A stretch of DNA of 63,534 nucleotides, filler included, from Trichosphaerium sp. ATCC 40318 (lineage: Eukaryota > Protista > Tubulinea): assembly GCA_038496445.1 (NCBI GenBank). It is 4 parts of 4 records of this genome, joined end to end, with 100 filler letters (N's around TTAATTAATTAA, not from the genome) between each part and the next. Parts side by side here need not be neighbours in the genome. Positions count along the whole stretch, not along the records: positions 41,619 to 61,834 come from JALMLS010000010.1; 3 more parts are not named here. One strand, written 5' to 3'. Below, in pieces: positions 41,619-61,834 of this stretch (positions within the stretch are counted from its first letter, which is position 1; every line of letters starts with the position of its first letter). A program made the position numbers and the translations under genes. The notes below the pieces were generated by a model, which was not told where the DNA came from, ran no database searches, and was given only the letters and a program-made list of their open reading frames with translations.

Positions 41619-42058
41619 TGAGTCATGTACATTTACTTAATTAGGAAGTTGACGTGTAACAATATGTGGGTAGTTTTGGATGTAAAAAAACGCGTCTAGA
41701 GGATTACAATGAAGCCAACATCTTTTCCTTTCACCATAACATAACTGAACCGGCTACGAATGAATGAAGGTTTTGTTTATTAAGTCTATGTCTACTTTTA
41801 AGACCGGTAGCTGTTTTCGAGTTTGTAGTTCGTCAACCTGGCCAGTATTCAAGGAGTGGCCATCATCTAGATTGTTGATGAAAACTTTGACAGAGAAAAG
41901 GATACGATACAAATAAAAAGTGACAAACAAAAAACAATGGTGCAACACACTTTAAAATAAAAGTAGACATTTGTTGAGGTAAAACTAGACTTTTTAAAAG
42001 ATGGATATCACAAAAGTTCCACTATTGAATTATATTAAAAGTACTTACAAGTAAATGA

Positions 42059-44462
42059 TCAAAAGGTGTGTTTATTATTTGTTAATGTTTTTTGTTGTTT
42101 TGCATTCAAAGTCCAGTTTACAGGCATCCATTGCACTGACAGCAAATCCTCATAAATGTTGTCTCCTTGTTCATCATCATAATTTATTTCCCATAATCTA
42201 TATTGTGCTGAATAACATTCTACAATACCTTTATACCAACCAATGCTTTCTACATTATTGTTAAATTATTTAAATTATATGTAGTACCTAGATCTGAATC
42301 TTCTGCAGTCCAAAAAACTGTTATTAGCTCTCCAACAATATCTAGCACATCTGTATTTGGTAAGTTTTGAACAACAGAAACACGTCTTTTTTTCTTTTTT
42401 GGAGAAAGCCATGATTTGTGACGTTTTTTTGGATGAGATATGGTTATTCGATTGGTAGTATACAAATCAGTATTGCCTACAAACTGTCATACAATAAAAT
42501 AACATATGTTCATACTAGCTAAATTGCAATATTGATATTGATAACTTTTATCATTTACCCAAACCAGAAAATCATAAGTGGGATTTGCTGGTTTTCCAAA
42601 ATTGATTTCTAAAGATTGCCAATATTGTCGTACTTCTGGTTCATGTATATATGGTAAAAACCATCTAATATTGTCAATTTTGACTTCTGTTATTGCTTTG
42701 GGTTCAATAATAGTTGGTAAAGTTGTTGGTATGTTTTTCTTAAAAACTAACTCTGCAGGCCTTTGTTTTGTCTAAAATGATTGTTAACAACAAGTATGTG
42801 TGTATATGAACATACCTCCCATGGCTCTGCTGATTGTGCAAAGTTTTTACATGCTAAATACACTTTACCATCAAGTTTTTTAAACAATTTATAAGCATGA
42901 GGCAATTTATGTCCTTTCATATGTCCAACATAATCTGTCATCCAGGTTTTTATGTCCCAAATGTTTGAAAAACTTTGAACAATTGGTTTATCTTTCATAG
43001 AATACACAGTTTGTTGAAGTTGCTTTGGCCAAAACACATCTACACTTCTTATTTTTTTTTTTAAACAACCAAAAAACTGATCTATATCAGTATGAGTGTG
43101 TTCCTAAAAAGTTATTAGCATATTTTCTTCTTTTTTCACATACTTGTAATAAAAAGTAGATATGAATTTCTTTGAATATGTTTTTTGTAATCAACCATGC
43201 TAAAGTGAATACCATCCATTGATTTTTGACTTCTCTACTACAATTATCTGCCTAATACACACTTATACTTTGTTTTTGATGAAAATAAGGTACTGTTATT
43301 GTTAATATTGGAGGATGTTGTCTATTTTGACAATGGTATTGTTCAATGCTGAATTTTAAATGCCACAATAAGGTAGATACAGAAAAATTTGCATCTTTAG
43401 AATATTGAGATTCGTAACATATAAGTAAATTCTTTAAGCGCAATCCGTGATTATGAAATCCTAAAACCATCAATATACACAAATTATATAGATAATACCC
43501 ATTGAATGTATATCAAACTTAGGTATTCTACTGAATTTTTTTGGACATCTTGCAAAATGAGGTAATTGTATTCCATCAGTTCCATCCATTGCAATGCTCA
43601 TTAATTCATCAGGAGTAGTTTTAGCAATTAGTTTTCTTTTTTGATATTCTATTCTTTCTCCTTTATGTAAACGCACATGACTTTTGTAATCATCCAAAAA
43701 CATGGTGCGTTGTTCTGTAGTAGTAGACCATTTGATCAATTGTTGTAAATACTCACAAGTATCACAATGACACAATCTACATATATTAACTCACATTTGT
43801 TATTGTCCAAGTACTTGGTTCGATATCCGAATTTGACATTTGAAAAATGACAAAGTAAAGTGTTATTGAATGTTGAAAATGATGGCACATTTTCTTCTTG
43901 ATCATCTACAAACTGTGCATATAAGCTTTCTTTAGTTTCATGATTTTTTAGTAATATCTACTTTAAGTTATTTAAATTTTTTGAATAACAACATACTTTG
44001 TCTTGATTTGGCATATAATCAGCATACAGTATATAGTTGTTAATCCAAGCAATGCATCTATTTGTTTTTTCTGCTGTTTTTATACCGATGTTACCATGAG
44101 GTGCTGGAAATTCATTACATAAAGCTAACTGGGCAGCTTTTTCTAATTTATGCTTGGTGATACCATAAATTACTTGAAAAGCACTTCGACATACTGATCT
44201 TCCTCTATAAGCTATAAATCCAATTGATATTAAATAGTATTTTGTACTTGAATTTATATTGAATATGTTTTTTCCCTGGTATTGGCACCATTCCCACCAA
44301 CAAGTTTTTTAAAAATATAGTTCTAGCATATTCATTTTGAAGTAAATAAGCTTTTCTAGCACTGGCTATATGTTGTGCAGAAATATGTTGTTTACAATTG
44401 CATTGACAAGCCAAAGATGCATATGCATTTGCAATACCAGCTTGAGTATACTTTTCATTGTC
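42059..44462 (-). CDS. Intron-split DDD transposase (Sola-like/DUF7869-type) with C-terminal Tudor-like domain
   Basis: VCRSAFQVIYGI, HGN.G, CDTC, SIAMDGTD, ADNCSREVKN, HTHTDIDQFF motifs; 5' start not resolved. Confidence 0.75.
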
Positions 44463-44488
44463 CTAGTATTTTCATTAATTTATCTGGT

Positions 44489-44720
44489 TATATGATATCC
44501 AGTTTAAAAATCTAGTTTTGTGAATATATGAAAACCACATAAGTAATTATGGTAACCAAAAACTGATTATATGATATCCAGCTTAAAAATCTAGTTTTGT
44601 GAATATATGGAAACTACATAAGTAATTATATGGTAACCAAAAACTGATTATATGATATCCAGCTTAAAAATCTAGTTTTGTGAATATATGAAAACCATAT
44701 AAGTAATTATATGGTAACCG
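44489..44720. repeat. Tandem repeat, 79-81 bp x ~2.9, inside the transposon
   Basis: TATATGATATCCAG.TTAAAAATCTAGTTTTGTGAATATATG... starts at 44489, 44568 and 44649. Confidence 0.92.
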
Positions 44721-45477
44721 GAAACAAGGTTGGCCATCAATAAAATCAGTTTTGGTAAAAAGGTTGTTTTCAATTTGAATCAAGATGATTTTCACATAAA
44801 AGCCCCAATAGCTTGTACAAACTGATCTTTTATGTTGTTTTAACTACTCAATACCTTTGATAAGATGTACATCTATAAACCAAAAGTGTAACACGCTATT
44901 TCTACACAGGCAGTCAATTCAAGTAAATTGTGCTGTATTTTCAAAACAAATACCAGAGACGGCACTGTGGACCATGGAGAGTACGTACAAAACCAATGCC
45001 GTTTTAGCTAGCGCCCACTCACTACAACGGGTTTAAATTCCACTAAAATTTAAGCGGCTGGGTAAAATACAAGGAGCGCTGTGATAACAACACCACAGGC
45101 TCTATTCCGCCGTTTTTCGCCAAATCTAATTATTTTTCGTTAATCCGTGGAGATATCACTTTAAACGCCACGACGTTGCTACAGCGCCCAAAAGCGCTCT
45201 TAAACGCTGCAATTTTAAAAAACAAAACGATTTTAGCCTGAACGATTTTTCAACACAACGACGCTCAAACAAACGCATGCTACACGGAATTTTTACGTCT
45301 AGCCTAAATTTTTTGCTCCGCTGGGCTTTTTTTTCTCAGCCAAGGCTTTTTGGCTGTACTGCAAAAAATATTTCTATTACCGTGCCTTTGATGTGTTGCT
45401 TTTGCCAAGTTGTTTATATTTGAATAGAAATTCTTGATGCTCCAAGCTCTTCCGAGTCAACAAGTGAAAGAAGCTCG

Positions 45478-46818
45478 ATGAATGGCAAGTTTATGGTAGA
45501 ATCTGCTGGTTGTATAGATTGTACAAACAAGGATGCAGTTTCATTAAAAGCACTGTTACAGTATATGAAGGAATCTGCTGTTCATAGCACTTGGTGGTTA
45601 AAAGATGTTGGTAGATTTGTGTGTGGCATCACTGCAACAGGCCAAGTACATACGTTTGTATACAAATAGGAATGTTAGCTGTTAAGGTACCTTACCATAT
45701 AATTTCTACATAGTTGTTTATTTTTTGTAGCAAATGAAAGCTAGAAAACAATTTGTTGCTGAAGCATTGGAAAGTGTTGAGTCTACAACAATTGGCCAAT
45801 TTGCCAAAAGTATGCGAGATCACTTACGTATTGGTGGTGATAAAATGAAAACATGCACAAAGGAGGAGATTAAACAATGCTATATACTAGCCAAGGTAAT
45901 ATATACTTAGATTTTAAAGGCCTTATTCACCATAGGATTATGTGTATTGTCATGCAATGTCTAGTACTAACACGCACTATTTTGGAGTTTTCAACGGTAT
46001 TGGCTACAATGACGTTTCTCGTACAGCTGTAGCAGTCGTGTTAAAAGGAGCAGATGTAACAAAAATTGGAGATAAATTGACAATTAAAAATGGTGCTACT
46101 GGTACAGTACAGTTTGTACATAACAAAAGCTCTCGTATACATGTTATGTTAAAAACTCCAATGGGGATGCAATCAATTTCAATTAGTAAAACGGTACCGC
46201 CTTCACCAACTGACCAAGGAATTAAAAGAAAGAGAAGCCAGATCGATGAAGTAAACAACTGGATTAAGGTACTACTTGCAGGTTTTGTTTATAAAATTAA
46301 AGAAATGTAGGAAAAACCATCAAAAAAACCCAAACTTCAGGTAAGTACTTTCTACTTTATGAAAAATTGGTAACCATGTATTAATAGAACGTTCTTAATA
46401 CAAAATTGGCCTCTGATGTTAGTAAGTTGTTTGACTTACTTACAAATTTGACTACAAGTCACGGAGTAATTGTCAGTGAGCTAAAGACAGTTTCTTCTTC
46501 ATTATCACAAGTGATAAACAATTATGAAGCAGTAACTACATTGTTGAAAAAAGAAAATGCTTGTTTACAAAACAACTTTGCTGACTTGGCCGATGAATTA
46601 GCTGTCATTAAAAAAATGATCAAGGTATGGTTTTTTTATAACAACCACTTTAAAGTACATTGTAGAAAATACCAAATAAGGATAATTCTGTTATTGAAAT
46701 AGACTTAAATGAAGATCAATATGATCAATCAGATGATGATGAACTAAGTGAAGATGAACTAAATAACTCTGATTATTTAAAACAGTTGGCAACAAATTTT
46801 TTTGATGAAAACCAATAA
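45478..46818 (+). CDS. Second transposon-borne gene of unknown function (NLS, coiled coil, acidic tail)
   Basis: Several GT-AG-bounded open exons; KRKRS, heptad segment LLKKENACLQNNFADLADELAVIKKMI, tail EDQYDQSDDDELSEDE. Confidence 0.55.
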
Positions 46819-46934
46819 ATAATACTTTCTGCATTTGTACTGGTTTTTTGCTTATTGTAAATTTTTTATTGTATACACCACTTTTAAGGTGAAAAAGTAC
46901 ATACAAATGACTGTGTAATACCACCTTTTTATTG

Positions 46935-47519
46935 GTATATACCACTTTTATGGTATGCTTTAAGAAGGTTATTAAGGAGCTTTTTGGTAGTGGGTGAGGT
47001 TGAACAATCACAGACATCATACATTAAACAGTGTGTAGGGATCTTAGTATATCATAAAATCTAACCAAACAAATCTCATTCGAACCAAAGGATTTGATTC
47101 CAATACCACCATTAAGGAACCTATATTACAGGTATTATACAGACGTTCGTGGGTACCAGACAAAGTTTTATTTTATTGTTGGTTGATATACATTAACTAG
47201 CCTACATAGGCCTTAGTAATTGATGGATTAAGGTGAAACTACTTTCATTAGGTGCACAGCATGTTTTTATAGTAGTTACAGCAAGATCATGGAGATGAAC
47301 AAATTTTCCAAACACCCATAGTAATGTAACTGTAGTGGACATTGTTCAAAACTTGTAACTCCCAAACTGTGTATTAAATAAAGTATTTTCTGGAATTAAT
47401 ATACCAAGGTTTCTACACACTGTTTAATGTGTGTCATCTATGATTATTCAGTGTGAAAACCCACTACAAAAAGTCTTCTTAATGACTTTCTTGAAGCATA
47501 CCATAAAAGTGGTATATAC
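46935..47519. repeat. ~105-bp imperfect inverted repeat pair (46935-47038 / 47413-47519)
   Basis: GTATATACCACTTTTATGGTATGCTT...CATTAAACAGTGTGTAG and its reverse complement. Confidence 0.85.
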
Positions 47520-50500
47520 TTTGGCAATAAATATAAAAAGAGTTGCAAGTATGAGATAGTAAAGAAAAAGATATTACATAGATGTTAAAAGCTGCACACA
47601 AGAAAAAATGAAATGGTACAAGCAAACATTATGTAGTAAATCAACATGCTTATCACATTCAAAATGTATGGTTTTATTTTTACAAATGTCTACTTTTATT
47701 TTAAAAGGTGTTGTGCAATTTACATATTTGTTTAAAATTACTACTGAAATTTCTGTGTATCACGTGCATGAAAAAGTACTCTTTTGATTTCTGCTGCACA
47801 GTTTTCAGGAGTAGCTCTAGGGTACATACTAGTCCTTGTAGAGAAGTAGTCGAGCGACTGAAACATGAGTACTGAATTCTTGATAGCACAACAAGTACAA
47901 TCTTCGCTGTATCCCGTACGAAAATAAGAACGAAACAAATACAAGCCCTCAACCTCAGGAAAGCACGGTGCCTTTATCCAGCTGATATTCACGTGAGGTA
48001 ACTACCACGATACAAAATAACGACAACACCTTTTGTCTACCTACATTGCTACAGAGATCTTTTTGCAGCTGAAAGTTTGGTTTCGGGTTTAAGCCATTTC
48101 CGTAGGCTACTTAACACTGTTTCTTTCATGTTTATAAAGACAGGATTAAACTAAGCGATATAGCGAATACGGAGATATTGTTTCACGTGATAAAACCGGT
48201 TTTTCCAAATTAATAGTATCCATCAAAACTTCGTTTTAAAACTGTTATGACAACGTTACACATACCGTTGAGTACGTTGTCCGGGTGTTTCCGGATCCTT
48301 TGACTGTCCTTGAAAAGTTTTATGACACTCGTTAATAATTTACCTTTTAATCATGAAGTGGTATAGCTGTAGTGTTGTTTTTGTACATAGTTTTTGGGGA
48401 CAAACATTTTCGCATTATCTGCAAAAAACGTTTTAGGCCAATCACGTTTTCCCTTTAAAATTAATAATTTAAGGATATACACTTGCGTATGGACATGTTC
48501 TTATGTTTTTTAAAGGGATTTCAATAGTGTTAATCCCAAAACGAAACAAACACTTTTTTTTTCTTGGTTTAAACAACAGTTCTCTTTATTTTGCTGCTTT
48601 ATATACGTTACATAGAAGCGCCGAAACAGAGTACACAAACACAGTGAATCAAAAACTAAAATAATAGAGTCCTAAAAGATTAATAAGCACGACAACAATG
48701 TAAGGAATACGAACCCTTCCTCTATTATCTACTTTTTAATAATGGGGATTTATAGACAGAAGCCGATTTTAGCTGCCTTGGTTATTCATAGTGATTGTAG
48801 TGATAACCAAGGCGCTATATGACGGTCATAGGCTTCTTTTGTAAGAGGCGAGCTACTAAACATGAGATTAGAGGTTTCTTTAGGGACCGCTGTCGTTGTA
48901 TGCATACCTTATCCGTACGTTAGACCAGTTTGATTCGCCTGGTTGTCTTCAAGAGCACTTTTCTTTTTTGCTAATGTTTTTGTTGTAAAACAAAGGAAAA
49001 AGTGTAGCGTCGAGAGTGAGGTAAGTCGCCTGTAAAGATTAGGTTGTTTATTTTAGGTCATTAAGTATACGTAGTGAGATTAATTGTTTCTTTTTTGATC
49101 GCTTGGTGGCGTACATTTTTTGGGCGAATGCTAGCAAAGGGTACGGTTTTGCAAGTTGAAAAAAAAAAGATCGGAATGGAACAAATATTAAAAACGGTTC
49201 GACATCACGTGATGGTAAGTTTCAGCGAGCTAAAGTAAAAAAAAAACTTATGCTCACTTCGAATAGTTGAAAAAAATATAATGATGTATCGTGGGCGTGC
49301 AAATGGCAACGAGCTCACGGGCGAAAACGTCTTGGGAAAAGTGCTACCTTTGCTGCGTATGGTAAAAAAAACAGTGTAAATGGCGTCAACTAAAATAACG
49401 AACTAGGTTTTTAAGATATCACGTGTGCGATCTTTTTGTCGTTATACAATACACACTCAAGTTGGGGTTTTGCTATCAAATATTCAATGGGTACGAGCGA
49501 TACCATGCGTGTTTTTGAACGAAAAAAATAAAAAAAATACGGTTTTGTTGACAACTTTTACTGCCAACTAGTAATAGTGTTTTGTGGGTTTTTTGGTTTG
49601 TTTAAAAATTAGGGACTCAAAAACTAGAATTGGAAGGCACTCGTAGCCTTGTTATTACGTTTAACAAGTGGTTTCAATAATTAAACAAATTTTCATACGT
49701 CAAAGCTTTTAGTTTGTTTTATTGCAAGGACGAAAAGAAGAGCTCGAGAAGAAAAAAAAAAATTTACAAAAAGATCTTGTTGAAAAAAAACTTTTCCTCT
49801 TTCGAACCCTATCCTCTTTTTTTTCCTTTTTTATCACGAACGTCAAGCCGCTTTTATCCTTCTTAATCACAAAGAATTTGAATCCATTTGGCTACATTTT
49901 AAGCCATGAAACCATCACTTAAGCATGCGTAAGTTGTCACCAAACAAAACGTTTTGGTTTTTGTGGTCTTTTTTATGGAAGTTTGAAACTAACCTGAAAG
50001 CCAGCGTCTGCTTTAATAAACATTGCGATCCGTACGTCCTTTGTCAAGCTTCACTAGGGTCATGTTTAGACTTTTCTCGTTACATAAAATTTAAAAAAAT
50101 CACGTGATAAAAAAGATACGCTGTAGTGGTATTAAAAAAAAACAATGTCGGTGATCTAAGGGAAACTGGTACGAAAAAAAAACCTGAAAAAATATGATTT
50201 AGGCTTACTTTTCTTTTGATTAAACTCGTTGTAGGTAAATGGCATACGATGGAGGCTCCCTAGCACACTAGTAGTAAAATTTTTGTGGCGCTAAACAAAA
50301 GAAATCATAACGTTCTCCAAATCAACATGAGACACATGTGTCTTCATGCTTGACTCCATTGATGGCAAATATTTTATATCGGCGGAAGCGTCATTATTGC
50401 AGACTATGTCATTTTAACTTATCATGACAGGTAGCTGAGCGCTAGCGCACACTTGTTGTAGCAAAAAAAAGTGGACTTTTTCAGGCAAGTATTTGTGTGA

Positions 50501-51976
50501 CTTACTATTGTTATACAGCGGTCAATACGAAGTGATAGTGCTATTCACGCATGACAATGAAACATAAGAAATAATTAGATGTCTTTTCGAATCGCTCATG
50601 CCTCAATGACGCGCTGTACAATGAGGAACTGTTGATAAAAATAACGTTGTAGGTAAACTATTTTGTTAAATGAGTTGTGCAGTTTAGAAGTTCCAAAGAC
50701 GTCAACAAACAGCTGATTTAGGTAAATATCGCCGTAGGGAACTCGAGTGACCCTTTTTGTATTGACAAAAAGTTGAAAAGGTACAAAAGTAGCCTACAAC
50801 TAGCACCGAGCGTAGAGCATGTTTTTTGTTTCTTTTGTCCTTTAGTTTTTTTGAAAAGAAAGCAACAAAAAAAAATCTCGTTCATGACTTCTTTTCTAGG
50901 TTGGTAGATGAGCTACAATTCTATTGGGGTGATATGTGTCAATACTATAACTATGTGTACTATCTTGAAACGTTTCCGTTAATAAATCTATCACATGTCA
51001 CGCACACTGAAGCTTCGCAAGTTTTTTTGCTGATGTTTTTAACGTAATTTTCCATCCTTCGTTTTAAACTGACGCATCATTTATAAACTCCGCTACATGA
51101 TATATAAATACGTGTGTACCTAGGCCCCAAAAACGAAAAATGGCAAAAAGAAAAAATCAAATCTGAAAAAAAACCAGAACAAGACTTTGCTCTCTAACAC
51201 CGCGTATTCACGTGGAGTTCCCTACCCGAAGAATTCCGCTTTCTCTGTAAAAATGGATTGACAAAAATAGAAAAAACAAAAGCATCACATCGCAAGGCCA
51301 GCACAGAGTGCCATCAAAACTTAGGTTTGTTCTATCTCATTTTTTTACGAAGGATTTTTGTTTTTGCTTAGTTTGCAGTACCGTATCACAACCACCGCTT
51401 TGCTGCACCAAGTTAAATACGCACAAATCACTTGTGATCTAACGGAAATTCTTAAATCTGTAAGGAATTTGTTAGCACATCATGACGTACATGAAAACTA
51501 GCAGAATTTTTTTTTTGAACAAAAATGTTGAAGTTTCATCTTTTATGTTTCACGTTTTCGGTTTATTTCCAAAAGGTAAAATACACTTAACATTGTACTA
51601 TCTAAGCTTTTATACGGAGATTGGAGTGGGTAAACTTTTTTTTCCGGGCGTCACTTTCTAGGAGATGAATGTTTAATTTTTTGCAAAGCAGAAAAAAAAA
51701 GTTTCAAACACAACGATGAACAGGACGCTCACCTACAAAGTAAGCCTATTATTTTTTGCTTTAACGGATACGGTTTATAACAGTGAACATATCCTCGTAA
51801 GTTTCTTGTCCCTACAACTGCAACTATGCCCCTAAATACTTATAGAATTAAAAAAGACGCCAAAGAAAATAAATCAAAATGTCATGTATGTGCATTAAAA
51901 AGATTATTTTATCAAAATTATTGGCCTTTCTATCCATAAAATTCAAGCACAAACTACAGCAACAACAAGAAAGAAA

Positions 51977-52423
51977 ATGTTTACATCCCATAACCTCTCT
52001 TCTGCATCTGCACGTGCAAATCAATTCGCCATAAAAAACACTAGAACCTCGAGAGTAAAGCGCCCGTGGATATTCAAGCCAGCCGTCGAGTTTGTCCATG
52101 AGACAGAGCGCTATCAGCTCACTTACCACCGATCAGCAGGTACACAGCCCCATTTTGCTCTTTATTTTACTAATCCAAAATTGTTAGTGAGCAAAAAAAG
52201 GTACAACGTGAGGAACCCGCAAGTAATGAGATACAAGAACAGCCATTACAACGGTAGAGCCATAGGTTTGGAAACATTAACAACATTCGAGTGCGAACCA
52301 CAAAAGGAAGTCAGAACAAAGCTATTTCACAATCCAGCGCCAGCTATGGACGTTTTCGTACATTGGAGAAGGTTTGTCTTTGTATATCATAGCACAGGGG
52401 ACGTTGAAAACAACCGTTGTTAG
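51977..52423 (+). CDS. Hypothetical protein, possibly with upstream exons from ~51716
   Basis: 148-codon ORF in AT-rich context; no recognised family. Confidence 0.35.
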   Translation: MFTSHNLSSASARANQFAIKNTRTSRVKRPWIFKPAVEFVHETERYQLTYHRSAGTQPHFALYFTNPKLLVSKKRYNVRNPQVMRYKNSHYNGRAIGLETLTTFECEPQKEVRTKLFHNPAPAMDVFVHWRRFVFVYHSTGDVENNRC

Positions 52424-53515
52424 TACAATACTTTGTTTCATTAATAATAAAACAACTTTGCTTTAATGATTTTTTCCACTGTTCGTTAGTACCGCTTGGT
52501 TCACGTGACACGTGATACGCCAACAATAGGCTTTTTTATTTGTGTTGTATGGGTGTTTTTTATTTCACTACCACTGGTACACTTGTGACGCGTGGAGATG
52601 GGTTACTATCCTGTTTAAAACTCTTTTGATTATAAACTACTTCTGTCTCGGGAAAAACGGTCGCTGTCAAAGCATTCTTGGGCCCAGAATGGCTCTTTGA
52701 TCATATACAACAATTGCTATAGCATGAGAGGATATATACAAGCCAACTAGCGTATACATAGGGTGTACTTTGTAGTAAAACTGCGAAAGGAAGCTTTTTT
52801 TGTTAGGAACATCAAAAACTTGTGTACGCCGAAGTATAAACTACCTTGCTGCTGTTTATACCAACCGTTTTTAAGACTGTTTTGGCATTGGCAAAAGCGC
52901 ACAACCTGTAGTAATGTCAGCTGTAATAACTTATGCTAGAAAGTCGTTTATTCGTTTTTATACGCGTGCGTGTTTATTGTGGAGTGGGTGGTACGGGCAT
53001 AAAACGATTTGGAAGAAAACCTCCCAATGGAGAAACTCACAAAAAGCCACGAAAGACAATTCGTATTGTATAAATACGCTCGGTCGATATTTCACAGATA
53101 AAAAAAACGAGTGTTAACGGATTTGAAAAAAAAAATTGGGGAACTCGGATTTGTCGGGCAAATCTGTCGTTTATTAGTGTAGCACTCTGTTTTGAGTAGT
53201 ATTGGTATGTATTTTTGAGTCGGACGCCAATATACCGCTTATTGAGACTATCGAAAACAGATCTCGTAAATCCGGGAAAAAGAAGATAGTAAGACTGTTT
53301 TCGAGTAGGACGTAGCTGGAAGTATTTTATTTGACGGAGTTTAGGTACTAGATTTGGTTTAAAACCATTTTTATTTTAATCACGTGTAAAGATACAATAA
53401 ATGTACGTAATGCAATAGAAACATTAAAAATACCATACACAAACAAAAAAACAACAAAAACACTGATCACTTTACAAAACTGCTCTCGCCGCTTTTTTTT
53501 ATTTTTTATTCGTTC

Positions 53516-56500
53516 TTATACCCACAATCGTATTGTTGAATCAGCGCCAGCACTAAATAGCCATGGTTGTCCAGGGTAAAAAGCGATGTCTAAAATTCCT
53601 ACGAGAAAAAACCACGTTAGCCATGTCACCGTACCCGTAAGTAAATACGTACCATATCCGTCTACGCGTTGGTGACCGCGTAATATTTTCAATGGAACAA
53701 TCAAAGCATTCTTCGTTAAATCATCGTACACCATTCCATGGTATACGTGAATCTGTCCATCGTCTGCACAGGAAGCGAAAAGAGGATACATTGGGTGAAA
53801 TACAACTTTACGCAATGAGTCTTTATGATATCTAGAAACAAAAGCAATCAGCCATTCCATCCACAAAAACGGAGAAAAAAAGAAAGTGAAATGTGTCGCA
53901 TCGAGTTGTGAGCAAATTTGAAAAAAAAAACGTACTTTATTCTCTTCCAAGGAGCTTCGGACGATAGATCGTGATCATACCAGTGTAAACGCTTCTCGTA
54001 GGTACCAATGATACAATTATCTCCTGTTTTGTTTAGTTAGCGAACCACGAGTTATATAAGAAATCTTCAAACCACTAGCACGTACCCTTTGGATGAACAT
54101 CAATTGACGAAATGAATTCAAAATTACCAGTAATTTTGTATTTCAGATTACGTGTTTTTAAGTCATAAACACGACAATATTGCTTAGAGCATAGATACAA
54201 CCAAGGCTTGAATGGATGAAATTTTACAGCAGTAATGTAACCTACAAAAAGAAGAAAATGTCAATAGATTGCCTTAACAACAGGCCACACTGTGTATCGC
54301 CTGGAAGTCCCCGAAATAACAAACGTACCCTTATTTTTTTTAAATGGTGCTTGTGTTTGTCTCTTTGTTATACGATGAAACAATACGGCTGTAGCAGTAG
54401 CTAATCGGACGCGTAAGATAGCGAATACGTAAGCTAAAGATTAACATACCTTGAGGAGCTACAGTTGCCATGTAGTCACCGCGGGAGTGCCAAGTCATAT
54501 GTTTTACGCTTGCTTTCTATACATTGCATTAGTTAGAGCCTAAAACGCCAATAGAGTATCGCTGTACGTACAACGTAGGCAAAGGTGATCTTAGAAGCGA
54601 TTTTATGTTCCCTCTCCTCTTCTGTAGGGTAATGCCATTGTACCTTTGATAGCATCTTATCTTGTATAATAGTTTCTCTATCTTCACCAAATAGAGCTTT
54701 TGTGTAGGCCGTTTGTTCTTCTGAACCAATATCTGGGACAACAAAGTACACACATTTATCACTACCAACGTATCGTCAAAAACCAAGCGAGGCAGTAGAG
54801 TAAAAAATTGTTCAGAAAAAAAATAAGCAAGAAAAGAAACAAAAGACGTCAACAAAAACAATCACTTACGTAACAACACAGAAACAACAGTAGTCAGGAT
54901 TTGGATTCCAAGATACTTGATGTATAATAGAGTCAAATTGCCATTTGTTTTGACAACGACCTGTTTGTACTTCCCAAAGACGAACAGTTTTATCGTCAGA
55001 ACCTATAAAACAAATATGTCAAAAAAAAAAAAAAAAATGATTTGTTTTTGTTTTAGAAACTAACCTGAGAGCATCCATTGTCCACTTGGATAAACGCTAA
55101 TAGATCGAACACCACCTTCATGACCAATATAACGTATACGTTCTTTTTCTGGGAAAGGTCTGAGTTCTTCTGGTTTTGGCATAGGAGGAATATCATCCCT
55201 GTTTTTTCGTTTTGTTTTCTAAACAAAACACGTGTTAATTACGGTCTAGAAACTTCTTGGTTTTTTCAAAGAATGGCTTCACAATGAAGAATGTGAGAAA
55301 TAATTACCTTTGGTTTAGGTAGACGTCTACACATGTATAGATCAAGGCATCTATCCATACGCTCTTTGAAAAAGTGCTGGTATGCCGGAACATCAAGGAG
55401 TTTGCCGTATGATTTAGGCTTCCAGTATTGTTTACGTAGTTCTTTTGGTGTTTTATCATAATTATTCTCTTCTCTTTCATCCCATAGATATTCTTTAGGT
55501 GGATTGTATGACTCTTCATTCTCTAATAAAGGAATTTAGAAAAAAAACCAAAAAAATTCTGAAGTTCAAAGAACACAAGGTTGGTCAACGTCGAACCCAC
55601 TCCAAGTAAATCCCTTTTGTACTGAAACAGAATGCAAAGGGTATTTACGCTTTCGTAGGGAAAAAGAACAGCGACAAATGAAGATTTGGTGAAACAAAAG
55701 AAAACAAAACGATTAAAATTAAACGCACGTGGTGGACGCTCTTTTGGCGCCAGTAATCTGTTAAGAGGATCTTTAGTATCCTCCTCATCTCCCCACATAT
55801 CATAAAACTGTTGAGAAATAAGAGGATCTTCAAGCATGCCATCATCTGTCTTTGGTTTCAACTTTTCAGGATCAAATTTAATAAACCCTTTGCGCATCTT
55901 GACCATCAGTTCTTGTATCTAAACAAAAGTCTTAATATCTCATCGGTTTACTGAATAAGTAGTACCTTCTGTTTCTCCCATTTCGAAGGCAAGAAGCTTG
56001 ATTTTGTAGGTGGTCGGTTAGTTACAGCATGTGTATCATCTTTATGTTCTGTAAACTCAACAAACCACTAATAATACAGTCAAAAACAGAACTAAACAAA
56101 AAAAAAAAGTTCTACGCACATTCTCTGACGCATATCGTGCAGGTTCCTCTCCCTTACGTATTTGTTGTATAATTTTAAGATCTCTTGCGGATAGGACAAT
56201 CTTCTTACCAGTTTTCTCATCGAAAACAACACGCCTGAAACAAGCTGTTAGACATCTATTTTCAGAAAAAAAAAAGAAAGAAATAGAAAATGCGAGGATA
56301 TGTCATGTACCAAGATGTCGGTGTTTCGTGTCTTGTAACCCATTTATCAATTTCATCATACTGTTTAGGTTTTTTGACTGGATTACCATCAAGATCATAA
56401 CCAAGATGCTCGTAATCATCATACCACTCAAGTGGTACATTACCGATTGTAGTGAGAGTACGCTAAAGGCATTAAAATAAAACAAACGCAAAAAACAAAG

Positions 56501-57047
56501 AAAAACTCTTTCTGGCTAATTGACTTGTCAAAGTATATTCATTTCGTGTACCTCATTTTCAGAGTCCTCAGAATCGTATAGTAGATCTTCTAGCTCTGAA
56601 ATATCCTTAAAGCCCATAGCTTCAATGTCAATTTTGTTTAATTTGCCTAATTTGCGCTTCCTAATGTTTTCTAGATCATCTTCAATACCAGTGGTGGCGT
56701 TTGCTTCCTTTTGAATGGAGCTGTCAGCAGCATCGACTGAAATGTGTATTAGGCTCGTTTAGCATATATTGGAGCATACCATCGAATAAATCTACGCCTC
56801 CCATCATACTTGGGCCTTTTGTTGATTCGCTTGCGGCACTGGAGGAAGTTTCTGCCGCCACAGGGCGCTTGCGCTTTGATGGGCGCTTTCCTGTAACGCA
56901 AGCTGAGCCACAGCGAATTTGCCAAAAAACAAAAAGGTAATAAAAATTTCTCAACATTTGCACAGCGTTTCGCGAATTATACAAGCATATACAACTGTTT
57001 GCTTTGACATTGCGCGTTTTTTTCTGCGTACCTCTTCTGTGAGACAT
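53516..57047 (-). CDS. BOP1: Ribosome biogenesis WD40 protein BOP1/Erb1
   Basis: IGNVPLEWYDDYEHLGYDLDG, FLPSKWE, ESYNPPKEYL, RCLDLYMC, YHGMVYDDL.KNALIVPLKILRGH, QPWLFSAGADSTIRLW. Confidence 0.93.
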
Positions 57048-57201
57048 TTGGGCTGTATTCACTTCGTCTCTGGTTACTTAACGAGTGTTGGTGTACTTTA
57101 CAAGTTTTTTTCACAACTTCTACGCTTTGACTTGGTCAAAACGAGTCTCATCTGGCAGTAGGTCTTAAAACGCTTCATACACCGCACCTGTCCTCTCTAC
57201 T

Positions 57202-59966
57202 ATGCTTTCAAGGTCAATTTGGCACGGACAGGCAAAAATCGTGCAAAAAACAAAGGGTAAAAATGCCATTGTAGCTTCGAAACAAGTGAGTGTAGGTAAC
57301 GAAAACACTTAATTAACAAAAGATAGACTATTCGAGTGCAAACACCCACCAGAGCGTTAACCCAGCTCCAAGAAGCCAGAATTAGCAGAAATAAAAGAGA
57401 TTTTGTACGCTGGGCGGCAAACAAACAATAAAAGTTAACCAGTTCGTATAGAAGCAGATAGACTTTGAAGGAGAGCAACATGTTGTTGTCTTTCCTCAAA
57501 ATTCATTCGGAAGATATCCAGCAGTTAATTTCACAATGGCACGATACCAAGTCGCACCTTCCGCCTGTACGTAATCTAGAGTACCGAAACACACAAAAAT
57601 AGAGTGAAACAAACCTATACAACTCATTTTACTTACTTTGTCGCAAAATAGATGGTACAACGTACAGAAATCCACATTTTCGCCATTTATTGATGCTTGC
57701 AGAGGGTGTAGCTGGTAAGAAAATGGAGAACTCACGTGTAGGCTTTGTTTGGTAACGCTCAAATCTAGATAAATATAAAGCTATTCACACTGACGCTGCT
57801 GATTCACCTATTGATCATAAAGTGTAAGTTTTTAGCGTTTGATCTTCTGAAAAAAAAGAGACTGATGAAAAATCAAGGTATTTTGTTGACACAGATCAAT
57901 ACTCTGTACCTGATGGCGTTGAATCTATTGATAAGAAACAATTTCGCTTCTTGGCTAAGGCTGTACGTATTTGTGGAACCCTTAAAGCAAATTCTAACGA
58001 AAATATGTCAATAATTTGTTTATTTAACTCCATCTCGTTTGTCGGTCTAATTGTTGTCTGTAGCAAACAGACTGGATGTCGGATCAAGATATCCCTCATA
58101 AATTCATGCATGATGCAGCTGTAGGTTCAAATCGCGCTGCTGAAATGAGGACTCGTACACTAATGGAAAGCGGAAATCACGCTTTGTACTTGAGGTATAA
58201 AGTTATTTTGTTTGATAAGCGCTAAATCAACCGTAGGCATTTATTATGTTCATCAAGATTATCAGGGTACGTATTAGAGATTCATTGTGGTTGCTGTAGC
58301 GACTTTTGATTTTTCAACGCCATCGATTTGAAAGTAGTGTAATTACTTGTATCTACTCGAAAAAATTCGTCCACGCGTCTACATTGGTATTTACGCGTAC
58401 AAAGCGAGTAGCGTATAGATTCTCCAAAAAACTTTCTCGACAACATTGTTTGTGACTAACGTTTGGTTAGTTATGGTGGTGTTCAACTTTGGTCATCTGA
58501 TTGGATCGTTTACATATCTCATAACTACAAATCAGAAAACCCATTGGTTGAGCGTGACCAAACACCAGGTACATGCCCTTTACTTTGAATTTGTTCCAAC
58601 TTGCCTGTATCTTAAATTTCTTTTTTAGAGTCCATTGGTATTAAGAATGGTCCTTTCCATGTTATCAACCCTGATAAGCGTGCGTATAAACAATTTTTGT
58701 AGTCTCTATTTAGCAGGGTCTAATATCACTTAGGAATCGTTCTTCTTGGCGCTTCTCAATCTACAGCTTCAATTAAACACTGTTTGGATACTCTACAAAC
58801 TTTCCACTATTTGTACTTTGAAAAGGATGCTCTTCCTCTACACGCACATACTTTTGTGAAAAACGGTGTATCATCACTTGTTATTGATCCATCTCAAGTG
58901 ATGCTTCAACAAGTACGAGGATTTTTTGTTACGCGTTTGTGGTTGTAACTCATCAATAGGCACCAAGAGGTGATATGTACGGCGCAAGCGGTGCAATTTG
59001 GAAACACGAAGGCGTTTACCGTTCATACGCCAGTGTTACACATTCAGATGCTGAGGCTCCACGCAAACGAGGGTATGATTACCGTTTTTAGTGGCATTAC
59101 GCTTCTAACGTTTGATATAGAGATTTTGTAGAGAACAATCCTCAAGGCACTTTTATCACAACTCCTCTACCAGATGGTACTGCTCTTTTGCGTTGAAAAA
59201 TTGTACTTACTTGTTGTTTCAGGCGAAGCAAGTTTTGTAGAGCACCCTAAATCAGTTGTTATAATGTTGCGTGATACTACTGGCGCATTTCCTCTTGTAT
59301 CTAGGATCGACCAAGCTCAAGCCGAAAAGATGTTTAAGGTTTGGCTTTCGCGTAGACCGTTAACTTAACAAACTTGCTAGGTTGGATTCACTGGAAACAA
59401 AGACCCTGCTTCCAATACCCCTTACTACTATCCTTCTTCCACTGCTTATGGTGATGTTGCTGAAAGTCGTTTCAAGAGCTTACTTACAAGCTACAAACCA
59501 CAAGTCTACGTTGTAAACGTTGTTAAGTACGTTATCAAATAGCTCTTTTCTCTTTCCCGAAAAAAAGCTCGTCCGTGTCGCTCTAACGTTATGAAGGGAC
59601 AAAAAGGGAACAGAAATATCTACAGCAGACCGTAATGCGTTACTTGATGCTATACTCGATGGTTCAGCGGTACAATTCAACGAAATTTTTTATTTCGTTT
59701 TCCTCGGTTGGTACTTTTATTCTGACTTATTTTTCCCTCTTAGGCTAAAGCAACAGCTACAAAGAATGCGTCATTAAAGGCTGAAGTAATTTCAAAGCTT
59801 GGTAGTTTAGATGTGAAGTTATTTAAGTAAGCATAAACTTAAACCACCCAAGTTTTTTTTATCTTGTTTTTTTCCTCATTGCAAAAAGTCCCTAACTAAA
59901 CTTTCTTCTAGGGGATTTGGTACACCAGCTAATACCAAGTCTGTTTTATCCAAACATGGTTTGTAA
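57202..59966 (+). CDS. Mitochondrion-targeted PEPCK(ATP)-fold protein lacking catalytic motifs
   Basis: Basic presequence; LPLHAH, HPKSVVIMLRDTTGAFPLVSRI, FKVGFTG, VYVVNV, LLDAILDGS are colinear with PEPCK-ATP; no GLSGTGKT or GDDEH. Confidence 0.6.
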
Positions 59967-60600
59967 GTCCACACAATAATCGCACGTGAAACAAAACGTG
60001 AACAACAACAAAAAAACAACAAAAGAAAAAAGCCAAAATATTGAAAAATTCTTAACTACTTGACATTTATTTCTCTCTTGCTCCCCCGCTTTATGGTATT
60101 GTACAAAAGAGTAAAATAAAATACTTACCCTAGCCCCATTTTTACTCAACACCTTATTTTCTTGCGCACATCGATAGTACCCGTGAGGCTGTTTGTATAA
60201 ATATTTTTTGTTCTATCATTTACTTTTATTTCGTGTTACAGAGTTGCTTGAACAGAATTCAGTCAAGTCTCATCATTCTGGCAGCATTAAGAACCTTCTT
60301 TTACCATTTTGGAAATCTGCTGTCAACGCCTTTATTGAAGGTACTAGGGAAACAGGTCCAAACCACTCAAACAACATTTTGCGAGGGTAGAAAAGTGGTA
60401 AAACCAAAAACATTTTCCGACATATTTCACGTATTTAAAATTTCGCCTTCATTTGGACATGCACCGTGATATTATAGCAGAAAATATAGAGCTCCTTGTA
60501 TTTACTAGTAAATAAGCGAAAACCATTAAAATAAACTACAAATTATCGTCAACACCTTCCTTTTCTGGAAAGTTTTATCACCTTTGTAGTAAACGCATTA

Positions 60601-61834
60601 ATGAAAGCTACAGTGTTCTTTTTGATAGCTCTCTCTACTTTTCTCTCTGTTACGCTCTCACAAGAAGATAATGCGTATGTAATTGCAAGCAGTACCATAG
60701 GGTTTGAAATACGATCAATAGACGACGCATCAATCATACTGCAAAGTACGGACCACTTGAGTGTATAAAAACACCAAAATGCGTAATTCTGTCTGTATCA
60801 ATGCGGACTAAACACCTTTAGCATGCGACAGCCCAGAACTCATTGATACAGCCGTTTCAATGTCTTATTTACCAGCAACGAATACGCTTTTTGTAAAAAC
60901 AAATGGATTCCTGTTACAAGTTGATCCACGCACATGTGAAGTAAAGGTACAAACCCTGAGTCAATTGATAGCCTTATATTGTGTTTATACGTTTATTACC
61001 TCTTTAGCATTCTTGTATTTCGGCGGGCTTTGGTCACATTGTCGTTGATAAGGAGACACAAATATTATATGGAGTGAGGGGAGTGTCGCCAACAATAAAA
61101 GCAGTTGCTCAGATTGATCCTACGGATTGCTCTTTCGAATACTATTGTGAATTAGATTACACGCTTACTACTAGTGGATGTGCGTTATTTTTTTTTTTTT
61201 TTTCTCGAGAAAAAAGGGAAGGAAAAACTTTTCGGAGAAGAGTATGACGAACTAAAAATTTGGATTATCGTTTTTTTTTTTACAATCTATTCCACTTTGA
61301 TTTTGTTGTTTGACTAATCCAGTTGTACTTTAACAGTGGAGATAATAGGAGATACATTATACGTTGCTAACGTTGGGTCAATTGACATAGCGCCTTTAAC
61401 AGGTCCTATGGCTTGTGTTACTAATCAAACAATTATAGACGAAGATATAGACCCAAGAGGTACATAGTTTTTATATTCAAGATAGTGTTGTTTACATAGT
61501 TGTCTAGATATTACTGCAGTATCAAATAACACAATCATTGGTATGGAGTTTAATACATATATCTCTTTGGATATTGGAACATCAACAATAACTGATTTAA
61601 TAACAACGCTTCCTGTGCGACGTCCGGGAGGCTTTTCTTCCCTGGTTTTTGAAGGAACTTTGCCACCTCCAAATAATACATTACCTCCTGTTGCTCCGAT
61701 AATACCAACACTCCCACCTACAATAGCTCCACAAGGAGGTGTGATTGATACTCTAATTGTGCAAAGCGGTAATATATTTCAATATCGGTTAATTTCAAAC
61801 ATATCCGTTGTTGTAGGATGTACGAATGTCATTT
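60601..61834 (+). CDS. 5' part of a surface protein of the 3982 family; truncated by contig end
   Basis: Signal MKATVFFLIALSTFLSVTLS; MSYLPATNTLFV...VDPRTCEV; PTIAPQGGVIDT...YRLISN matches PTIAPDGGVIDV...YRMISN. Confidence 0.75.

Follow-up and report, generated by a model that had tools for sequence, protein, structure and literature searches.

The integrase of HIV is tethered through the PWWP domain of LEDGF. The chromoviral (Ty3/Gypsy) integrases, for example that of MAGGY, carry a royal-family reader at the C-terminus of the element's own DDE/D enzyme, for which tethering to marked chromatin has been proposed; according to work cited by Grau-Bove et al., these chromodomains target chromatin methylated at lysine 9 of histone H3. 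A Tudor domain is found at the C-terminus of the polyprotein encoded by the Ectocarpus long terminal repeat (LTR) element Gypsy-10_Ec32, which in 2025 was, to its authors' knowledge, the first transposable element (TE) with a Tudor (PMC12477816). Here we describe a putative DNA transposon of the protist Trichosphaerium sp. ATCC 40318 (Tubulinea; assembly GCA_038496445.1), in which a transposase of the DUF7869 family appears to end in a single Tudor-like domain. The element lies in a stretch of 63,534 nucleotides, filler included (the window), within the part that comes from JALMLS010000010.1. The window holds the one available copy of the element, and all of its features were read from the DNA sequence of that copy.

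Compared with the chromoviral integrases, the Trichosphaerium protein carries a Tudor and not a chromodomain, belongs to a cut-and-paste DNA transposon and not to an LTR retroelement, and probably addresses another mark. Gypsy-10_Ec32 shares the C-terminal position of the Tudor on a TE-encoded protein, but its enzyme is a retrotransposon integrase and not a DNA transposase, and the likeness is taken from the published description. Grau-Bove et al. found 823 gene models in which a TE domain is combined with a chromatin domain, PHD and Chromo making up most of the latter. Their screen made use of PF00567 for TUDOR and of the TE domains in Pfam; DUF7869 is absent from the transposon domains shown there. 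The fusions given include hAT with Chromo (sponge), Tc1/Fot1 with PHD, LINE with TUDOR, and a Harbinger gene model with Tudor-knot/MRG, so that capture of chromatin readers by TEs, DNA transposons included, is common to those cases and to ours. No Tudor on the DDE/D transposase of a bona fide element is present in the searched parts of their tables, and none was found in the literature that we searched. To the extent that these sources cover the field, this agrees with an earlier sequence-only reading of the window, which knew of no description of such a fusion for Sola-like transposases. Since reader capture by TEs is already established, the novelty of the present case lies in the type of domain and in the class of element that carries it, and not in the principle.

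Our interpretation, which we hold with moderate confidence, is that the locus is a terminal inverted repeat (TIR) transposon, the DUF7869 transposase of which ends in a single Tudor that reads a methylated histone lysine and so biases insertion. The basic stretch ahead of the domain would direct nuclear import of the transposase. The Tudor would then dock on a methylated histone tail, the mark being perhaps low-methylation H3K4 or similar, and would hold the transposase or the transpososome near marked nucleosomes, giving a bias of insertion by a tethering that may be likened to that of the chromoviral integrase chromodomain or of LEDGF PWWP with HIV integrase. The resemblance to a reader of monomethylated lysine 4 of histone H3 (H3K4me1) would suggest transcribed or poised chromatin, and not heterochromatin, as the target. 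The gene structure, the in-frame fusion, the resemblance to a known Tudor and the retention of pocket residues are what the sequence shows, as described in the following paragraphs; how the domain folds, what it binds and where it takes the transposase are inferred. The coordinates are collected in Table 1.

The Tudor-like domain is encoded by the last two exons of the modelled transposase gene. When the spliced segment was compared by phmmer with the 177,635 sequences of the PDB, one match was significant, 7de9_A (E 0.0088), in which query residues 10-70 align to residues 12-64 of the 66-residue chain, across the splice junction. In PDB 7DE9, H3K4me1 is bound by the Tudor of Arabidopsis RDM15/PDS5C (PMC8184781). 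By way of calibration, the 7DE9 segment itself was searched against the PDB and found the next solved Tudors, those of the lamin-B receptor, at E values of 0.06-0.17; by sequence, the window's domain is nearer to 7DE9 than any other solved Tudor is. The Smith-Waterman score against 7DE9 is 79, to which both exon parts contribute, whereas 5000 shuffles gave a mean of 25 (standard deviation 4.9, maximum 56; z ~11). The only Pfam match is to PF21743, the PTM/DIR17-like Tudor, at 14.2 bits (E 0.038) for exon 10 alone and 12.1 bits (E 0.17) for the spliced segment. Nine of the ten best named language-model neighbours (Atlas) of the unmodified exon-10 translation belong to the Tudor clan, which is represented among them by Spin/Ssty, PTM/DIR17 Tudor, Tudor-knot, Agenet, MBT and Tudor_3. 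We consider it likely, with good confidence, that this segment forms a Tudor-type barrel, which in single Tudors has five beta-strands in ~60 residues, and its nearest relatives by sequence are the single Tudors of the RDM15/PDS5C type.

Like the RDM15/PDS5C Tudor and the related Tudors of plant, cryptomonad and SAR MSH6 proteins, the window's domain is a single domain of ~60 residues that aligns over its full length, and it shares with RDM15/PDS5C a Y-D-D motif that follows strand 3 and a terminal W-x-P. It differs from the latter in possessing six extra residues in the beta1-beta2 loop, at the site of the intron, and while the RDM15/PDS5C and MSH6 Tudors sit on cohesin or mismatch-repair proteins, this one sits on a transposase. 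The sequence-only reading had arrived at the same spliced peptide (IVGELITVFW...LLSVQW, residues 589-646 in our numbering) by removing the same 38-nt intron, and our model reproduces it exactly. Of the Tudor/Agenet pattern that it assigned to this peptide, the Tudor part has gained a full-length match to a solved structure, and the Agenet alternative found no specific support. The basic nuclear localization signal (NLS) that it placed ahead of the domain, KKKKRR, lies at the end of a longer bipartite NLS-like stretch; its candidate aromatic cage corresponds by alignment to the cage of RDM15; and the proposed fusion to the transposase C-terminus is borne out by an in-frame join, within the inverted repeats of the element, with matching codon usage. 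At the level of sequence that interpretation is largely supported; taken as a whole, with its fold, transcript, reader function and Sola label, it is supported in part.

The roles of the binding residues were taken from the description of the RDM15 structure (PMC8184781) and transferred by means of the 7DE9 alignment. The aromatic cage of RDM15 consists of W616, Y623 and Y641, D643 and D645 hold the methyl-ammonium group and confer specificity for monomethyl-lysine, and E647 binds H3R2 (PMC8184781). All three cage residues (3/3) are kept in the window's domain, together with one of the two auxiliary Asp residues, so that the Asp pair of RDM15 is incomplete here. Because the D645 position is occupied by Gln, the specificity may differ from that of RDM15, in the degree of methylation that is read and perhaps also in the residue that carries it. 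According to a preprint on PDS5 evolution, PDS5B without the Trp has lost its affinity for H3K4me1. On the strength of the alignment, the balance tips slightly towards a working methyl-lysine pocket.

Several observations weigh against our interpretation, and they are given here and below with the alternatives that they favour. The best of these alternatives accepts the barrel and dispenses with histone reading: the domain might bind DNA or a subunit of the transpososome, in the manner of the C-terminal domain of retroviral integrases, which is an SH3-like barrel, or it might bind a methyl-arginine protein. Small C-terminal barrels are commonly accessory to DDE/D enzymes and may bind DNA; moreover, the second methyl-ammonium Asp of RDM15 is the one replaced by Gln, and for the Gln that binds H3R2 no clear equivalent is seen. 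A barrel that served DNA binding alone would, however, have no need of the three cage positions and of the Asp at the D643 position, all of which are kept, and the closest relative is a histone reader and not an SMN-type or extended Tudor. We consider this explanation unlikely.

A distinctly less likely alternative is that the Tudor resemblance has arisen by chance, and that the lineage has a C-terminal extension of its own, differently folded or unfolded. The E value of 0.0088 is modest, the PF21743 scores are far below the gathering cut-off of 27.2 bits, and the Atlas neighbour scores do not exceed 0.85, a range classed as "lead only", with a low "recognition" value. Single-sequence AlphaFold modelling of the spliced 81-residue segment produced helices of very low confidence (predicted local distance difference test, pLDDT, 41.8), which provides no model of the fold and neither supports nor refutes the barrel. 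Searches for relatives of the domain with the spliced 93 residues or with the 7DE9 segment returned none, these searches being length-filtered in a way that hides long proteins, and a metagenome scan for relatives gave one distant locus only, without a Tudor. Against chance stands the agreement of three independent methods on the clan and of two on the family; in addition, the aligned part of the solved chain makes up 53 of its 66 residues, the positions of functional importance agree, and true pairs of PDB Tudors score lower than this one.

The transposase gene was modelled on the minus strand by frame analysis and motif-guided splicing, and is a prediction from genomic sequence. The chance of its 668 codons remaining open is ~5e-22 at this base composition, where a stop is expected approximately every 14 codons. 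The nine introns measure, in order, 43, 39, 38, 38, 42, 40, 44, 75 and 38 nt; every one of them begins with GTA and ends with AG (9/9), the ending being TAG in seven. A branch-like yTAAy motif is situated 10-13 nt from the 3′-end in four introns, including the one within the candidate domain, an enrichment with P ~0.02 over a background rate of 12%. This last intron runs from 42287 to 42250 (GTACTAC...AATGTAG); exon 9 ends with ...GAT TCA GAT CTA G (42288) and exon 10 begins with AA AGC ATT GGT TGG, the junction codon G|AA specifying Glu. Two upstream "introns" of 18 and 22 nt were dropped, in-frame introns of 38 and 43 nt being those that fit the homolog alignment. A ciliate-type reassignment of stop codons was ruled out as a substitute for splicing between the two Tudor exons, which are out of frame with each other across the 38-nt gap.

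Exons 9 and 10 share the coding character of the remainder of the gene. A run of 63 open codons has a chance of ~0.01 at this base composition. With a codon-usage model trained on exons 1-8, these two exons score +32 bits in the proposed frame as against -44 and -29 bits in the others; every intron scores below zero whatever the frame, and in the 3′ flank the score does not exceed +1.5 bits. For the Tudor part taken by itself the score is +16.8, whereas the highest of 2000 shuffles was 7.4. The frame stays open across both of the extra introns, which are of the same size class and have the same GTA...AG ends as the other seven. Given the open frame, the codon usage, the intron type, the branch motif and the Tudor alignment across the junction, the spliced exon pair is more than chance, and as far as can be judged from the DNA, the Tudor exons are very probably fused in frame to the transposase.

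It could nevertheless be argued that exons 9 and 10 are a captured or neighbouring fragment of a host gene, belonging to a separate transcript or representing a pseudo-exon, and that the in-frame join is an artefact of the model. Splice and fusion were both read from DNA, and the sole sequencing run that contains this locus is a low-coverage DNA run, in which it is represented by four read-length contigs. Furthermore, the homology conserved in the family stops at residue 538, before exon 9, and the usual C-terminal module of the family is a different one. The codon usage and the matching introns argue the other way, as does the place of the two exons, which follow the catalytic core, precede the left inverted repeat and finish near an AATAAA; in the homologs, too, the conserved core is succeeded by a linker and a small C-terminal module at this same position. 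This possibility we rate slightly below that of a chance resemblance.

The catalytic core of the protein is readily assigned. On a single exon, Pfam DUF7869 (PF25273) matches with 72.3 bits (E 5e-20; gathering cut-off 26 bits). The spliced product aligns by phmmer with the 750-residue product of a Thecamoeba transcript (P0046) over residues 69-538 (E 4e-56), and the alignment is free of gaps at all seven splice junctions that it crosses, the first junction being just upstream of the aligned span; this provides homology support for introns 2 to 8. The invariant acidic columns in the family alignments are the D of IIIDGMDQ, the D of DNC.RENKN and the D-x-D of GHTHEDIDQ, while the Glu of HTHED is variable (T, A, K, S). 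The window's transposase retains every invariant catalytic Asp and is, by sequence, a member of the DUF7869 family with a DDD-type triad. Bao and colleagues are said to have described, in 2009, Sola transposases with a DDD catalytic triad. Our triad agrees with this; the placement itself reaches DUF7869, and "Sola-like" is a tentative label.

An exhaustive HMMER search with the catalytic exon yielded 64 homologs, none more than 40% identical, from amphioxus (Branchiostoma), sea anemone (Exaiptasia), mussels (Mytilus), brittle star (Amphiura), an amoebozoan transcriptome (Thecamoeba) and metagenomes; they are unnamed or labelled DUF7869. The DUF7869 proteins of animals and amoebae share with ours the core motifs IDGMDQ, DNC.RENKN and GHTH.DIDQ, the N-terminal Cys motifs and a helical region after the core. 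The family profile found no match among solved structures. A distant relative of the transposase, of 26-34% identity, is located on metagenome contig Ga0187893_10089149 (L001:204-1812); it is apparently intronless over the aligned part and is without a Tudor-like tail.

The gene is enclosed by inverted repeats on both sides, as is expected of a cut-and-paste DNA transposon. An inverted-repeat scan of the window showed the two arms, each of 63 nt, to be complementary at 79%, and the whole window contains the 24-nt perfect core of the arms just two times, the copies being inverted relative to each other; the number expected by chance is 0. Only 60 nt separate the stop codon of the transposase from the left arm, and both Tudor exons are therefore inside the element. 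Sola elements have a target-site duplication of 4 bp. Next to the arms we saw no short direct repeats that match, the ends of this one copy being placed approximately and not to the base. The GC content is 0.29-0.32 over the transposase gene, with 0.29-0.30 at 42619-44618, and 0.34-0.42 in the host flank (48619-61618); the transposase introns have only 23% GC, and the AT-rich piece that carries the locus has 35%.

Two peculiarities of this copy must be added to the adverse observations. There is no in-frame ATG within the modelled frame; the nearest one (44457, in the region 44451-44457) is off frame by one base, beside a run of four A residues, and the start is either supplied by an upstream exon or has been lost through a one-base slip in the copy or the assembly. 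In addition, the near-invariant Gly before HTH, present in 44 of 45 homolog motif hits, is Glu (43103-43101). Given the missing start codon and this substitution beside a catalytic motif, the copy may be defective. That the locus is a domesticated, immobile host gene derived from a transposase and equipped with a reader domain, as the single copy, the many introns and this same Glu might suggest, is highly improbable in view of the flanking inverted repeats, the second gene borne by the element, the GC content below that of the flanks and the full set of catalytic Asp residues.

Table 1. Features of the Trichosphaerium element and its surroundings, with positions counted along the window
Feature	Position	Strand	Remarks
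Whole DNA transposon, putative, ~5.8 kb	41936..47720	.	inverted repeats at both ends; minus-strand transposase gene and plus-strand accessory gene inside
Left terminal inverted repeat arm	41936..41998	+	perfect core 41951-41974
Transposase gene, as far as modelled	42059..44462	-	10 exons, 9 introns, frame of 668 codons, TGA 42061-42059
Transposase exons 1-5	44462-44248, 44204-43997, 43957-43815, 43776-43499, 43460-43294	-	
Transposase exons 6-10	43251-43144, 43103-42816, 42771-42559, 42483-42288, 42249-42062	-	
First catalytic Asp motif, MSIAMDGTDGIQLP	43560..43601	-	family consensus IIIDGMDQ.KT.LP
Second catalytic Asp motif, ITADNCSREVKNQ	43219..43299	-	family consensus DNC.RENKN; interrupted by 42-nt intron 43293-43252
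Third catalytic motif, QEHTHTDIDQFF	43071..43146	-	family consensus GHTHEDIDQ; interrupted by 40-nt intron 43143-43104; D-x-D kept
Exon 9	42288..42483	-	linker, NLS-like stretch, first strand of Tudor-like domain (IVGELITVFW)
Basic bipartite NLS-like stretch, HPKKRHK...PKKKKRR	42382..42435	-	in exon 9
Intron 9, 38 nt, GT-AG, phase 1	42250..42287	-	in beta1-beta2 loop of the domain; TTTAAC 12 nt from 3′-end
Exon 10	42062..42249	-	remainder of Tudor-like domain and 19-residue polar tail, then TGA 42061-42059
AATAAA poly(A)-signal-like hexamer	42071..42076	-	just ahead of stop codon
Tudor-like domain, model residues 589-649, 61 aa	42119..42339 (intron included)	-	similarity to 7de9_A
Counterpart of RDM15 W616 (cage)	42312-42310	-	Trp of VFW
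Counterpart of RDM15 Y623 (cage)	42235-42233	-	Tyr of WYKG
Counterpart of RDM15 Y641 (cage)	42181-42179	-	Tyr of INY
Counterpart of RDM15 D643 (methyl-ammonium)	42175-42173	-	second Asp of YDD
Counterpart of RDM15 D645 (methyl-ammonium)			Gln
Counterpart of RDM15 E647 (H3R2)			Asp
Tandem repeat, 3 copies of 81-nt unit	44469..44709	.	separates the two divergent genes; adjoins the modelled transposase exons on their upstream side
Accessory multi-exon gene	45478..46815	+	divergent from transposase gene, inside element
Nested palindrome	arms 46935-47052 and 47399-47519		inside element, near right end
Right terminal inverted repeat arm	47658..47720	-	perfect core 47682-47705
Host gene BOP1/ERB1 (ribosome biogenesis)	53516-53950, probably to ~55.9 kb	-	E 6e-29 to human BOP1

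The C-termini of the relatives differ from that of the window's transposase. The DUF7869 homologs end in a BAH-like barrel or in a basic tail, and a Tudor-like tail is present in none of the 64. At least 11 of them share a module of ~90 residues with the consensus f.iG.Il....l.I.WY....W.P, which we aligned from residues 612-716 of one homolog (P0062) and nine other homolog C-termini (alignment A3); other members have basic tails. The fold predicted for this module is a confident one (pLDDT 82, predicted template modelling score 0.75), and its best structural matches are the BAH domains of SHL and EBS (Z 7.3 over 79 residues, 2.6 A), followed by those of ORC1 and DNMT1 and then by PWWP and chromo-barrel domains. 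With Z below 8, a likeness of the modelled module to BAH readers is no more than suggestive. A derivation of the window's domain from this module by divergence was rejected, since hhalign gave a probability of 0.5% and the hidden Markov model of the module scored nothing on the window's protein. A homolog search for further relatives of the BAH-like module returned the query alone.

A profile of the BAH-like module (alignment A2) also matches the extreme C-terminus of the Nipped-B-like protein (PDB 6wge_E/6wg3_E, construct residues 1553-1634; E 6e-4), which hints, by sequence, at a relationship between the tail of this cohesin loader and the transposase module.

Since the window's element has its Tudor in a place that relatives fill with a BAH-like barrel or with a basic tail, the C-terminus looks like an exchangeable targeting module, that is, a variable slot of the family that is often filled by reader-like barrels. 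One could extend this to the proposition that the DUF7869 (possibly Sola) transposases choose the chromatin into which they insert by means of exchangeable C-terminal readers, in most cases a BAH-like barrel and here an H3K4me1-type Tudor, the BAH-like module having perhaps been donated to, or being shared with, the C-terminus of NIPBL. In this full form the proposition is rather doubtful.

The remaining features lie elsewhere in the element and in the host flank. In the product of the accessory gene there are a segment resembling a coiled coil and an acidic tail rich in Asp and Glu; a Pfam search showed no known domain in it. The three copies of the 81-nt tandem unit between the two genes are 80-96% identical and may be promoter repeats or subterminal binding sites. 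The arms of the nested palindrome, ~115 nt in total (61 nt complementary at 89% and 52 nt at 81%), surround ~350 nt, and the structure looks like an insertion resembling a miniature inverted-repeat transposable element, or like a hairpin. In the flanking host gene, the alignment to BOP1 skips ~18 codons of the open reading frame, from which it follows that the host likewise has short introns (~54 nt).

That chromatin guides the integration of LTR retroelements and retroviruses is amply documented, while among cut-and-paste DNA transposons such guidance is represented mostly by scattered Chromo or PHD fusions. If our interpretation is correct, the Trichosphaerium element would be a natural and compact example of epigenome-directed DNA transposition, in which insertion is directed to gene bodies or active chromatin rather than to heterochromatin, and its domain and the mark would make a testable pair. 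Reader modules of this kind are relevant to the designers of targeted transposase tools. Taken with the BAH-like modules of the relatives, the Tudor suggests that a poorly studied superfamily has acquired readers repeatedly; should these readers prove to be exchangeable, the family would be the first group of DNA transposons with systematic, swappable targeting to the epigenome.

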